Shown: positions 1-46,165 of the stretch, piece after piece
How the letters are laid out: the number at the start of each line of letters is the position of its first letter
Numbering within the stretch: position 1 is the stretch's first letter
Assembly (NCBI GenBank): GCA_964035545.1
Contig: OZ037772.1
Span: 6,804,889 to 6,868,888, forward strand
Direction of reading: 5' to 3'
Length of the DNA: 64,000 nucleotides
Source: Bugula neritina
Lineage: Eukaryota > Animalia > Bryozoa
Translations under genes and position numbers: made by a program
Notes under the pieces: model-generated
Told to the model about the DNA's origin: nothing
The model's database searches: none
What the model saw: only the letters and a program-made list of their open reading frames with translations

Positions 1-3000
1 CATGTATTCTGTTTGAGTTGTATTCAAGGACATTACAGCAAACATAGAACTGTGACATGCCCTGCTTGTGGGTGAGTAGAAACTATTCAACGTATACTAG
101 AATGATATTTCCTAAGTTTGTCCAAACAATTATTTTATATTTTCTAAAGCCTTCTGAAGCTATTGTAGATGTGCTAGATACTTTGCAAGCTCATCTTGAG
201 TAATAATAGTTATATGCAGTGTCATCTCAAAACATGTAATGCAGTAAAAGCTATACCAATAATGGTGGTTTTATAATGCTTTTCATATTTATTGTTATTA
301 AAAAAAAAAAATTCATTTTTAAAGCCCTGCTGATAGCAATAATTTCTATAATTTTATTGCTGATGGTGGTCATGTATTCAAATCCAGCCTAGGAGTCGTT
401 TGTATATTATTTTTGAAATTGTTCACATATTGAATGTCATGTTGTATGTTATACTGGAAGCATCATGGGCTATAATGAAATTATTACAGACAAGTGTATG
501 GCTCACTGAAGTTTGAAGAATTACCTAAGGTTGCCATAGCAACTGGTCAATCTAGTACTCTGTACTGTACAGCTCATGGATGTCAAGGTCAAATAGCTAC
601 ATGTTACTGTGTAAAGTGTGAAGTTATGTTCTGTACTCAACATCAACAGGTATGTTATACCTCAACCACTGCATCTCCAAATTCCAAGGCCAGGAATCAG
701 TACAGTATTGTGTTACTTGTAAATATCTGTTTTGTTTTTAACATCAACAGGTAAAATGATGCACGCGCAAATTTATAGTAAATTTCTTAGATGTTACACT
801 CCAAAGCTATACACATGTACACACACACGCACACATACACGCATACACACGCACAAATGCGCACACAGGGGCCCCGAAATGCACACACACGCACACACAT
901 GCGCACACACACGTTCACACACACATACACATACATATGCACACACACATACACACTTACACGGTTGAACACTTACACACACACACCCACACCTAGTATA
1001 TGAATTATACACGATTGCTACACACATGCACACACACATGCACACACACATGCACACACACTCATGCAGACATACAAATGCCCAAAGGCATGTATGTGGA
1101 GACATTTGTGTGTGAGTGCAAGTATATGTATATGTGTATTTGCATGTGCAAGTGTGTCTCAACTTTCTTTTACATTGTTTTATTTTCAAACTTTTGGATA
1201 CTGCTTCAAATAAAAATATTGGAGTTATATAGTTATCTATTTATGTTAGATTCAAACAAAATATGTTTTTAATTTTAGGCACACAAAGCAATGTATGGTG
1301 AGTTTCACAAGGTAGTGGACATTGATGTCTACAAGAGATCACCTGCCAGCTACAATAAACCAACATGTGAACATCATCAAGAGGTTCTGGTGAGAGCTTG
1401 TAAGAAATGTGACAAACTGATCTGCTTTGAGTGTGAGATTGATGGCTATGACTGCACAGGTATGTAAAATAGTGTTCACATATATAACCGAAAAGTAAAA
1501 TTGAAAGTATTGCTTCATGGTTGCAATACAGAGTACAATTTCACCTAATAAAACTAACAAAATTGCTATATTATAGTTTTTGCAGTTTATCTAAATAATA
1601 TAAAATCATTATAAAAATAAAGTTGCAAGATTTTTTGTCATCTACTGATCTGTAGATGAACATTAGGTGTGTATTTTAGCTAAAAACAAATTGTGTTAGC
1701 AATGCAGTGTATCTTTTGATTTAACAGTCATTTTGTGCCAACTTTCTATGAGCTCAGCAGTAGTTGTGTAGATTTACAAGACTATTTGACAATAAGGTTT
1801 AATAAGGTTTAATAAGCCCTTTAGCCAAACTGATCTTTAATAATTTATTTTACAGTTATACTTAAATGAATAATCGATTACTTGATGTTTGCAAGTGAGT
1901 GATGGAAATTTATACTAGACAATTTCCTTTTACGTTTTACATGATGTCAAAAATACTAAAAATGGAAAGGCAGTATATATAGGGTGATGGGTTTTATTTG
2001 CTGTTTCTATGTAAATTTTGGCATTCAGTTTCTGATTGATTACTACATTCAGCATTATATTTCTTTTTGTAGATCAAGAGAGACATGATTTTAAGTCTCT
2101 CACATCACTGAAAGAAGAGGTAAACACCTACTTTTCTACTCAGATGCAAGTAATTGCTGAAAAGATTACCAAGATAAGTTGTTTGGACAAGAAAGTTTGG
2201 AATGATCTTGACGATCAAGAACAGAAGTGTTCAGATGTTATAAGAGAGATAGAGACAGTTAGAGATGAGATGGTGAGTGGTTAGTTATAGTTTCTTTTTG
2301 TGATGCATTTTTAAAACACCAAATTTTTTGAAAGTGTACGTATCCTCAAATGATTTAACTTCAAAAAAAAATTAGGTCAACATTAACAATGTATAATGAA
2401 TTTAATATCGCTATCTTGCGTATTTATATATATTCTCATTAGGTCTTTAAAATCCGTAATAGCTAAATACAACTTCACACAAGTTTGACTTACTAAACAA
2501 AGTGATAATAAATTATTTGTAATAGTATACTCTGCATCTTTTTAATATATAACAAATAATGTTGATATGTTCTTGAAAATTGATTACCATGATACTATAT
2601 TCTAAAATTAGACAGCAACACTTATAAAATACAGGAATAAATGCTTCATACATGTACTAGAATGCAGAATTCATTTGTGACAACTAAGAAACTATTCATT
2701 GTTAGTCAATAAACTAAAATGAAAGTTTTGTGGTTGTATACAAAAGTATTTTCAGTGAACTCAAAGCAAACTTTTCTCAATAAACTCTCAGTTAGAAACT
2801 AATCCAGAAATGTAAAAATTCAAATTGAACGTTTTTGCATTTTTGCTAAATATTTTCAAATCAGACAGGAAGGCATGTGTAAATATTAAAATAATTATTT
2901 TTCACTAAATTAAAATTTTCTGCAACTAAAAAGCTTTTCTTTGAACTAAGTTTGTCATATATGAAGTCTGAGCTTGAAACAAAGCTGAAAATGTAATTAA

Positions 3001-44106: not shown

Positions 44107-46165
44107 ATGGCTGCCCAGCAACTACCGGACTGGTATGAGTGTGGTTATTGTGTCTCTAAGAGAGATGACATGAGAGATCCAAGAAAGCTGCCTTGTCAGC
44201 ATGTATTCTGTTTGAGTTGTATTCAAGGACATTACAGTAAGCATAGAACTGTGACCTGCACTACTTGTAGGTGGGTCAAAATTATTCAAAGTAATAGACT
44301 GATAATATATAAGTCTAGTCAAACAAGTTTTATAAATTTGATGCAGTCTCCAGAAGCTATTAAATATGTGCAAGATACTTTACAAGTTTAGTTTGAGCCT
44401 TATTAATTAAATGTAATATTATCTTGCAACATGCAGAGGAGTAAAAGCTTTACCAAGCTCGGTGGTTATATACTTTTCATATTTATTGTTTATAAAAATA
44501 CTTCTTGATCATATTATTAATATTATTTCTATATAATAGTGATCAAATATTCATGTCCAGCCTGGAAATTGGTGGTATATTTTTTGAAATTTATCATGGA
44601 TGAAATGTATATTATATTGCAAACATGGGCCTTTAAAATTATTGCAGACAAGTGTATGGCTCACTAAAGTTTGAGGAATTACCGAAAGTTGCCATAGAAA
44701 CTAGTGACTCTGCTCCTCTGGACTGTACAGCTTACGGATGTCAAGAACAGGCAGCAGTGAGATACTGTGTTACATGTAAATACAGGTTTTGTTTTCAACA
44801 TCAACAGGTAAAATATTAATTGAGTGGAATAGCGCTTTTGCTTTTCCAAAAAAATGTCTTTGTTGCACTTAAAATCTATACACATTACATATTTCTGTTG
44901 CCATACGCACACACACACACGCACGCACGCACGCACGCACGCACGCACGCACGCACGCACGCACGCACGCACGCACGCACGCACACACACACACACATTC
45001 GTGAGTGCAGATGTCTTAATGCGTGTGAATTTGCATGTGCGCGCGTGTGCGCATGTATGCGCGTGTGTGCGCATGTGTGCGAGTGTGTGTGTGTGCGTGT
45101 GTGTGAGTGTGTGTGTGTGTATTTGCGTGCGTGCGTGTGCGCGCGTGTGTGTGTGTGTGCGCGTGTGTGCGTGTGTGCTGTGTGCGTGTGTGCGTGAGTG
45201 CGTGTGTGTGTGTGCGTGTGTGTGTGTGTCATTGTTTACTTTTTGTGCACTTTTTTAAAAATTTATCCATTTCAATCTCGTGTTTATTGAAAATATTTGA
45301 ATTACACGTTTTTCTATAGTAATAATATATTCCAACAGAATGGTGTTTTAACTTGCAGGCTCACAAGGCAATTTATGGTGACTCTCACAAGGTAGTGGAC
45401 ATTGATGTCTACAAGAAATCACCTGCTAGTTATGATAAATCAACATGTGAACAACATCAAGATGTTCTAGTAAGAGCTTGCAAGAAATGCGATAAACTGA
45501 TCTGCTTTGAGTGTGAGATTGATGAATACGACTGCATAGGTTTGTTAAAAAGCTTCTTAAAATGAGGAGCTGAAATTTTTATAAAGCTGTTATACGTTGT
45601 TAAAAATTTCATAATATATAGTTATTAGACAAAAATCAGATGAGATCGGCTAACAACAACCTATAAGAATAAGTCAGTTTTTTCTATTAAACGGCAATTT
45701 TGTGCAGAACTCATTCACTTTAGTCAATTTGGAAAGCGATTATAAACCCTGCTAGCCAAACTATCCTTTCATTATTTACTTTACAGTTTACTTGACTGAA
45801 TAACTGATCATTTATTTTGTGTTGCAATTGAGTTCTGATAATGTATGATAAACGTAATGTTTTTAGGTGTTTCTAGATGCTAGAAACTCGAAAATTAAAA
45901 ACATCGCAAGGTCATTTCATTTGTAATCAAATTTTAACTTTTTTTTTGGAATGGAAATTACTACATTTTGCATTTTTTTATTTTAGACAAACAGAAACAT
46001 AATTTTAAATCTCTTACATCACTGAAAGGAGAGGTGAACACCTACTTTTCCAGTCAGCTGAAGGTAATTGCTGAAATGATTACCAAGCAGGGCATAATTT
46101 CACAGTATCTCGTCTTCAGACATAACACTTATGTGCCAATACGAGATACATTACATCATAAATAA
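44107..46165 (+). pseudogene. TRIM gene C, interrupted in coding exon 4. Exons 44107-44270, 44648-44807, 45359-45539, 45987-46087; reads into the insertion to a stop at 46163-46165
   Basis: RING and both B-box exons are intact and the same size as in A and B. Homology stops abruptly after ...ATTACCAAG (46087) and never resumes in the window. Confidence 0.85.
44904..45229. repeat. (CACG)n/(CA)n followed by (TG)n/(TGCG)n in gene C intron 2
   Basis: Directly visible; the two tracts are mutually complementary. Confidence 0.95.

Follow-up and report, generated by a model that had tools for sequence, protein, structure and literature searches.

A tandem array of TRIM-type genes with a predicted NHL-class propeller under diversifying selection in the bryozoan Bugula neritina

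To our knowledge, fast-evolving arrays of TRIM genes are the textbook case of a host-virus arms race only for the SPRY-type TRIMs of vertebrates, and the TRIMs of the NHL type are regarded as a conserved, developmental branch. As for Bryozoa, we know of essentially no immune receptors that have been described. Our subject here is a 64,000-nucleotide stretch of the genome of the bryozoan Bugula neritina (contig OZ037772.1 of assembly GCA_964035545.1, positions 6,804,889 to 6,868,888 of the forward strand, or G000:C8:6804889-6868888 in the 216-Mb assembly; hereafter the window), which holds three genes, A, B and C, built on a common plan of RING, B-box-like modules, coiled coil and beta-propeller. 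On balance, we take them to be three adjacent members of an extensive tandem family of TRIM-type E3 ubiquitin ligases that is specific to the lineage and whose diversifying propeller probably binds fast-evolving targets. What the locus provides is quantitative evidence for an SPRY-like evolutionary logic on an NHL-class propeller in a lophotrochozoan.

Fast-evolving, lineage-specific and positively selected TRIMs have been tied to the SPRY domain, with NHL TRIMs listed among the other C-terminal types (Sardiello et al. 2008, PMC2533329). The closest systems of that kind are primate TRIM5alpha and TRIM22 and the teleost finTRIM and bloodthirsty-like genes ('group 2' in PMC2533329), and the array in Bugula is like them in its conserved RBCC part (RING, B-box, coiled coil), its tandem expansion, its birth-and-death turnover and the positively selected loops of its recognition domain. 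It differs in that the variable domain is predicted to be an NHL-class propeller where theirs is PRY-SPRY (B30.2), in that its host is a lophotrochozoan, and in that antiviral function and inducibility have been shown for the vertebrate genes but are hypothetical for the array. The class VII TRIM-NHL proteins (Brat, Mei-P26, Thin/TRIM32, LIN-41/TRIM71, TRIM2 and TRIM3) share with it the order, as predicted here, of RING, B-box, coiled coil and six-bladed propeller (Z 18.4-18.9 in structural alignment), but they are conserved and single-copy, while the genes here are high-copy and fast-evolving, with no threshold Pfam NHL match and no filamin/Ig domain; the presumed ligand face, judged by its positively selected sites, is hypervariable here and conserved there. 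Vertebrate TRIM56, which is antiviral (PMC2533329), is by description similar, with an RBCC part leading directly into a degenerate NHL-like region that is missed by standard repeat models, although TRIM56 is a single conserved gene.

Nearer to Bryozoa, many TRIM2/3/45/71-like transcripts and loci of oysters have been associated with resistance to ostreid herpesvirus 1 (OsHV-1) or tolerance of Perkinsus (PMC9437489, PMC9892467), and the bivalve expansions, annotated as TRIM2/3/45/56/71-like, are like the present one in being large lophotrochozoan expansions with NHL-type C-termini. Lophotrochozoans are thus already known to have large TRIM expansions that are suspected of a role in immunity. 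In the literature that we searched, whose coverage is limited and no proof of absence, we found no bryozoan TRIM expansion and no positively selected invertebrate NHL-type TRIM, nor, for the mollusc families and with the same limited coverage, any report of positive selection on one face, of exon-limited conversion or of promoter cassettes. The NHL-class family described here behaves like the SPRY group and is a variant of the TRIM5/finTRIM logic.

A first-pass annotation of this DNA, made from its letters alone, had proposed three tandem paralogs of identical exon architecture with a conserved RING and a variable propeller, and on both counts it proved right. Self-comparison of the window reveals a tandem duplication of three units, and mapping of the exons places three plus-strand genes on one plan, in which exon 1 encodes the RING, exons 2 and 3 are B-box-like, exons 4 and 5 encode the coiled coil and linker, and exons 6 and 7 encode the beta-propeller, for a protein of ~594 aa. 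Paralog analyses were based on 20 loci read from the genome (13 full genes and, for exon 6, 20 of its 34 copies; exon 7 was located in all but five loci). The exon lengths of 164(170)/160/181/200/277/669/134 nucleotides, the phases and the AG/GT boundaries are identical in the 13 full-length paralogs, and where exon 7 is within reach 12 of these 13 have open frames of 594-606 aa.

The TRIM-like nature of the N-terminal part, also proposed at first pass, is supported by Pfam, most firmly for exon 1, which matches zf-RING_2 (34.3 bits, cut-off 27.3), zf-RING_UBOX (32.1, cut-off 25.2) and zf-C3HC4 (30.1, cut-off 21) and retains all eight zinc ligands in 13 paralogs. Exon 3 reaches 23.1 bits against zf-B_box, for which the cut-off is 24.1 (E 8e-5), and its sole match in the PDB is the B-box of TIF1-beta at E 0.28; exon 2 gave no Pfam or PDB match despite its Cys/His pattern. 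The ~160 residues of exons 4 and 5 gave weak Pfam matches, to TRIM_CC at E 0.12 and to other coiled-coil families at E 0.002-0.1. In Pfam searches no exon matched Filamin, the propeller beginning ~25 residues into exon 6, directly after the coiled-coil exon, and there was no SPRY/PRY match, the C-terminal domain being a beta-propeller. That propeller is itself unrecognised by Pfam, with no match of the protein to the NHL repeat (PF01436) and only weak ones to COPA/B beta-propellers.

Its nature emerged from structure prediction. An AlphaFold2 (AF2) model of exon 6, aligned with 49 homologs, has a predicted local distance difference test score (pLDDT) of 93.8, a predicted template-modelling score (pTM) of 0.89, and 19 strands that make five four-stranded blades; exon 7 adds ~44 residues, which is blade-sized and would supply a sixth. 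Foldseek ranked the NHL domain of Drosophila Thin first, and VIA-align gave Z 18.4-19.5 against the six-bladed NHL/YWTD propellers of nidogen, LRP6, PknD/Pizza6, Mei-P26, Brat, Thin, TRIM71 and TRIM2, which are statistically tied. A profile of 50 sequences matched the NHL domain of TRIM3 at E 6.6e-18, then those of TRIM2, Thin, TRIM71 and Brat, the repeat motif of blade 5 accounting for most of the match, and the closest clusters in the ESM-Atlas are mollusc NHL 'hypothetical proteins' (score 0.93). These results agree with the earlier suggestion that the variable head is a divergent NHL-like propeller, and on the models the domain would be a six-bladed propeller of the NHL/YWTD class. An exhaustive search by HMMER through 1.84 billion representative sequences returned only 157 proteins at E <= 1e-3, mostly short predictions in the style of open reading frames (ORFs) from environmental assemblies. 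All named matches that were looked up, at 33-36% identity, belong to Watersipora subatra, a cheilostome bryozoan, and one of them is annotated as 'E3 ubiquitin/ISG15 ligase TRIM25-like' and shows the same order of RING and B-box; no mollusc protein was found at HMMER significance among them.

The three genes in the window are a slice of a very large family, as follows from the copies in their array and from the number of RING exons in the genome. The array spans ~590 kb and holds at least 34 copies of RING/B-box/coiled-coil genes; exon 6 alone has 34 full-length matches (71-83% amino acid identity) between 6.63 and 7.21 Mb of C8, grouped in blocks that run in either direction. On that contig ~12 other copies, of 49-60% identity, form a second array at 9.31-9.42 Mb, and a few more are on C7 and C9. 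Elsewhere the genome has dozens of propeller ORFs at 22-27% identity, and for the RING exon there are at least 150 scored matches, of 310 candidates genome-wide, with arrays on most contigs. Pfam NHL matches also occur elsewhere in the genome and none lies within the array, so the family is separate from the canonical Pfam-NHL loci. Its copies number at least 34 and its closest named homologs are at 33-36% identity, so that it is neither low-copy nor conserved one-to-one across species. Turnover is evident as well: exon 5 of L011 carries an insertion of 4 nt, exons 4-5 are missing from L006, whose exon 6 is frameshifted, and several loci consist of sets of 3' exons only. Such frameshifts, exon losses and 3'-only loci, together with exon debris in the window, indicate birth-and-death evolution, and the copy count, the decay of individual genes and the splitting of gene C (described below) bear out the earlier view of birth-and-death, here within a large lineage-specific array. 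We also observed that exon 1 of L003, L007, L013 and L018 carries a 6-nt (two-codon) insertion, '...CPI[NK]TCG', just ahead of the last pair of zinc ligands, making it 170 rather than 164 nt; on its sequence, this insertion appears to mark a subfamily of paralogs.

The contrast between the two ends of the protein is strong. By the Nei-Gojobori method in the 13 genes, the ratio of nonsynonymous to synonymous rates (dN/dS) is 0.18 for the RING, 0.32 and 0.19 for the first and second B-box, 0.19 for coiled-coil exon 4 and 0.32 for coiled-coil/linker exon 5, as against 0.82 for propeller exon 6 (0.82-0.94 across estimates) and 0.65 for exon 7. Between genes A and B, dN is 0.123 and dS 0.154 in the propeller, compared with 0.122 and 0.402 in exons 2-5. 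Codon site models were fitted on fixed trees with code of our own, whose log-likelihood under M0 (-4819.99) equals that of iqtree. In 20 exon-6 sequences, M2a (-4598.54) is far better than M1a (-4693.54), twice the difference in log-likelihood (2dlnL) being 190, and it assigns 7.9% of the codons to a class with omega 5.9, 54% to one with omega 0.20 and 38% to the neutral class. The 13 intact genes alone give a 2dlnL of 144, with omega2 6.4 in 10% of codons at nearly the same sites, while in the N-terminal control of 327 codons from the same genes M2a equals M1a (2dlnL 0) and omega is 0.34 overall. The RING/B-box/coiled-coil part is thus under purifying selection, and the signal of M2a belongs to exon 6. 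As tests of this kind can be inflated by recombination, exon 6 was refitted as four segments of ~55 codons on their own trees, which gave 2dlnL values of 61.6, 1.5, 43.9 and 20.5 (sum 127), three of the four being highly significant.

Fourteen sites in exon 6 have a posterior above 0.95 (residues 2, 9, 29, 31, 46, 68, 89, 113, 114, 155, 194, 211, 212 and 215), and their placement on the propeller is regular. With the inter-strand loops numbered along the DSSP string of the exon-6 model, all 12 of the sites that lie within the propeller fall in even-numbered loops, that is, before the first strand of a blade or between its second and third strands (the d-a and b-c types). In an antiparallel meander alternate loops share one face, and the 12 sites therefore lie on a single propeller face, the residues of the background being divided 102 to 97 (Fisher p 2e-4). 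When the sites found segment by segment are added, 17 of 18 are on that face (p 6e-5), and the mean posterior omega there is 1.30, as against 0.57 on the opposite face. In the convention that is usual for propellers the selected face is presumably the 'top', which Brat and LIN-41 use for RNA. The evidence supports diversifying selection that is genuine and is limited to the propeller, and within the propeller to one face.

Recombination has also left its mark on exon 6, for which the pairwise homoplasy index (PHI) is 0.417 against 0.500 +/- 0.008 in 1000 permutations. Median dS is 0.13 in exon 6 and 0.37 in exons 2-5, the two being nearly uncorrelated over gene pairs (r 0.25), whereas the 200 nt of intron on each side of exon 6 differ at a p-distance of 0.34-0.35, and all intron flanks at 0.33-0.46 compared with 0.06-0.16 for exons. 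A DNA run, X1, covers introns and exons alike, and its unitigs are 5-10 times deeper on the exons, so that words of 31 letters common to many paralogs occur in the exons only. The simplest reading of these sequence comparisons would be gene conversion among paralogs that is limited to exons. Over window positions 1230-5400, the summed unitig depth of run X1 was seen to be ~3000-6900 on exons and ~60-1400 on introns.

Upstream of the genes lie repeated cassettes. Gene B has two (plus strand, 9584-10096 and 10531-11109), each combining a kB-like site with a TATA-like box, an invariant AAAATGAAACTGCC block and a CT-rich stretch that is putatively a non-coding exon, the donor AAAG|GTGAGT being kept only in the second, at 11109|11110. 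Gene C also has two (plus strand, 42819-43141 and 43272-43527), with AAAG|GTG donors at 43141|43142 and 43527|43528 and a perfect palindromic kB-like site at 42900-42910; gene A has three, which are upstream of it and outside the window, and other paralogs carry one to three. Fifteen aligned cassettes share the TATA-like box, a near-invariant AAAATGAAACTGCCTGTCACTCCCCCTGCC block and a CT-rich tract of ~120 nt, and mostly end in AAAG|GTGAGT. The window contains this string three times, always at the end of a cassette, where 0.07 occurrences would be expected, and exon mapping of the paralogs shows an AG before every ATG. With a donor at the cassette end and an acceptor-like AG before each ATG, the cassettes look like alternative promoters with non-coding first exons, although the AAG before the ATG could alternatively be Kozak context. 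They have just 22 matches in the genome, of which 19 are in this array, two at 4.96 Mb of C8 and one beside the paralog on C7; a transposon was considered and rejected, since the copies are so few and those outside the array lie beside related copies, and the cassette is therefore specific to the family. The pair at 4.96 Mb (G000:C8:4959704-4960990, 85-87% identity) is 1.85 Mb upstream of the array and may belong to a dispersed family member or be a translocated promoter.

These cassettes had been described at first pass as carrying kB-like and IRF-like motifs, a claim of which part stands. The repeats are real, the kB-like decamer has the same aligned position in all four cassettes of the window, and a GAAAC(T) core is present in 15 of the 15 aligned; loci with interferon regulatory factor (IRF) domains and with Rel-homology domains are present in the genome. 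The kB-like sites are, for the most part, imperfect (among the window cassettes only that at 42900 is perfect), and the generic interferon-stimulated response element (ISRE) pattern GAAANNGAAAS is not enriched in the window, with three occurrences against 1.15 expected. As a separate observation, a second perfect palindromic kB-like site (GGGGATTCCCC) lies at 16255-16265, in intron 4 of gene B and outside the cassettes.

How such a family might work can be sketched by reference to the vertebrate precedents. The variable face of the propeller would be a binding surface for fast-evolving targets, the likeliest being proteins or RNAs of viruses, of other intracellular parasites or of retroelements. 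Binding of a target would gather the RING domains through the coiled-coil dimer, with the target's ubiquitination, or signalling, as the outcome, after the manner of TRIM5alpha and of finTRIMs in fish. The array would then be a germline repertoire of specificities, in which paralogs trade propeller-exon sequence while their introns diverge almost past alignment, and from which members are lost through frameshift, exon loss and transposable-element insertion, gene C among them. Each gene would have one to three cassettes, each supplying a TATA-type promoter and a non-coding first exon of ~120 nt that would be spliced from AAAG|GTGAGT to the AG before the ATG. In its fullest form, which we offer tentatively as a possibility, this amounts to a bryozoan germline repertoire of dozens of intracellular TRIM ligases, with a propeller face that is reshuffled by exon-restricted conversion and sharpened by positive selection and with promoter cassettes that tune the expression of its members: innate variable receptors encoded in an array and built on none of SPRY, leucine-rich repeats (LRR) or immunoglobulin (Ig) domains. 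If the targets are pathogens, the genes are a candidate family of intracellular immune receptors for bryozoans, and they hint at a role for the unexplained TRIM-NHL-like expansions of molluscs. The ~15-18 selected loop positions on one face make the hypothesis directly testable.

Several points weigh against this reading and should be set beside it. The terms 'immune-inducible' and 'pathogen-sensing', which were attached to the genes at first pass, would rest on analogy and on short promoter motifs. A kB-like site is present in eight of the 15 aligned cassettes and conforms perfectly to GGGRNWYYCC in three, and the GAAAC block, which is located between the TATA-like box and the presumed start of transcription, may for that reason be a core-promoter element and not an IRF site. 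The B-box and coiled-coil assignments are at or under Pfam thresholds. As to selection, the use of segment trees reduces but does not remove the inflation of M2a by recombination, and one of the four segments is non-significant, while the face was called from the order of DSSP strands in a five-blade model of exon 6 rather than from coordinates. Lastly, the low dS of exon 6 could partly be selection on synonymous sites.

An alternative that retains the repertoire but changes the conflict would have the genes serve in colony allorecognition (fusion or rejection), in the control of bacterial symbionts or in the silencing of retroelements in the germ line, and we think any of these rather unlikely. 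One-face positive selection with gene conversion would suit any arms race or self/non-self system, bryozoans are colonial, and the array is itself full of insertions of long terminal repeat (LTR) elements and long interspersed nuclear elements (LINEs). Allorecognition at the cell surface is, however, poorly suited to a TRIM-type protein whose predicted model has no signal peptide or membrane anchor, and known allorecognition loci show allelic polymorphism at few genes, not 30 or more paralogs; between retroelement and viral targets these data do not distinguish.

It is improbable, in our view, that the pattern is largely a side effect of gene conversion and of relaxed constraint within a redundant, partly decaying family without a specific fast-evolving ligand, the omega above 1 being an artefact of recombination or of a mis-specified tree. 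Such an explanation draws on the significant recombination in exon 6, on the copies that are pseudogenes or fragments and on the segment that loses significance on its own tree. Relaxed constraint, however, would bring omega near 1 and not to 4-10, and the likelihood gain persists at 144 in the intact genes and at 127 over the summed segment trees and is absent from the 327 N-terminal codons. In addition, the selected sites are periodic and fall on a single face, which recombination artefacts do not predict, and all but one of the 13 full genes retain open frames of at least 594 aa. A most improbable and largely refuted origin, as duplicated developmental RNA-binding regulators of the Brat, LIN-41/TRIM71 or TRIM2/3 type, would account for the profile matches to the NHL domains of TRIM3, TRIM2, Thin, TRIM71 and Brat and for fold similarities of Z ~19, but it is at odds with the lack of a Pfam NHL repeat at threshold and of a filamin domain in genes that lie apart from the canonical NHL loci, with at least 34 copies undergoing turnover, and with a putative binding face that is the least conserved part of the propeller, the opposite of conserved RNA-contact residues.

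The window in which these members of the proposed ligase family reside is AT-rich (~32% GC) and eukaryotic in character, with microsatellites and retrotransposons. Gene A (plus strand, 1..5360) is intact and, with its RING exon completed from flanking genomic sequence, encodes 606 aa. The start of the window cuts the RING exon, leaving its last 71 nt (1-71), and the remaining exons are at 490-649, 1279-1459, 2073-2272, 3081-3357, 4204-4872 and 5191-5360, as mapped on L014 (window position equals L014 position minus 4489), with AG/GT boundaries everywhere and an open frame. Downstream of it on the same strand is the exon debris that the first-pass annotation had reported, recovered by blastn of the gene B exons against the window as an exon-6 tail at 6946-6998 (83% identity) and an exon-7 copy at 7513-7652 (81%); judged by its sequence, it looks like the remnant of a mostly deleted paralog.

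Gene B, also on the plus strand, encodes 594 aa with no stops. Its C3HC4 RING is in exon 1 (11805-11968), where the ATG at 11805 is preceded by AG, its B-box1-like Cys/His pattern is in exon 2 (14059-14218) and its B-box2, the match to zf-B_box given above, is in exon 3 (14960-15140). Exons 4 and 5 (15883-16082 and 23419-23695) carry the coiled coil and linker, as supported by frame and splice sites, and exons 6 and 7 (25004-25672 and 25961-26094) the propeller, with blades 1-5 in the former and the presumed last blade and the stop codon in the latter. The intron between exons 4 and 5 holds a degraded LTR retrotransposon of Gypsy type (18207..23409, plus strand), identified by a match to RT_RNaseH_2 (E 7e-31), a 5-bp ATATT target duplication and LTRs that are ~90% identical. 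Its 3' LTR ends 9 nt upstream of exon 5, and the original polypyrimidine tract must therefore have been replaced. That the 1.8-kb coding sequence remains open despite LTRs of only ~90% identity suggests continued constraint or repair by conversion. The element includes a palindromic segment of 1.5 kb (21385-22875), to which a separate repeat of the same intron, at 16600-17650, is related in either orientation, an arrangement suggestive of nested or foldback insertions. Beyond gene B, in its 3' flank, a non-LTR retrotransposon on the minus strand (27378..30921), with endonuclease and reverse transcriptase ORFs that match Exo_endo_phos and RVT_1 in Pfam, interrupts the homology between A and B.

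Gene C had been taken for a broken copy that is truncated at 46165, and here the earlier account has to be revised. Exon mapping places its 5' half on the plus strand, with the RING at 44107-44270, exon 2 at ~44648-44807, exon 3 at ~45359-45539 and, of exon 4, its first half at ~45987-46087, where homology ends. The second half of exon 4 lies ~19.4 kb downstream, at G000:C8:6870428-6870534, ~1.5 kb beyond the end of the window, and after it come exons 5-7, intact and with good splice sites (L008; 3971-9832). Truncation by deletion was accordingly rejected, as the missing parts were found, and exon 4 is instead split at 46087 by inserted DNA that fills 46088..64000 and continues for ~1.5 kb past the window end, ~19.4 kb in all. 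This DNA contains LINE-like ORF fragments on the minus strand at ~55.6-56.5 kb, and a search of the window found no TRIM exons in 46088-64000.

Simple repeats complete the inventory of the window. CA/TG-rich microsatellite tracts are found at 780-1200 in gene A and at 44820-45260 in gene C, in both cases in intron 2, so that the tract either predates the duplication or recurs there. A (CT)226 microsatellite at 11257-11701 separates the last cassette of gene B from its RING exon, within the presumed first intron, and the intergenic region between B and C, in which GC skew is strong, contains a (TAG)n / 23-mer tandem repeat at 37954-38355.

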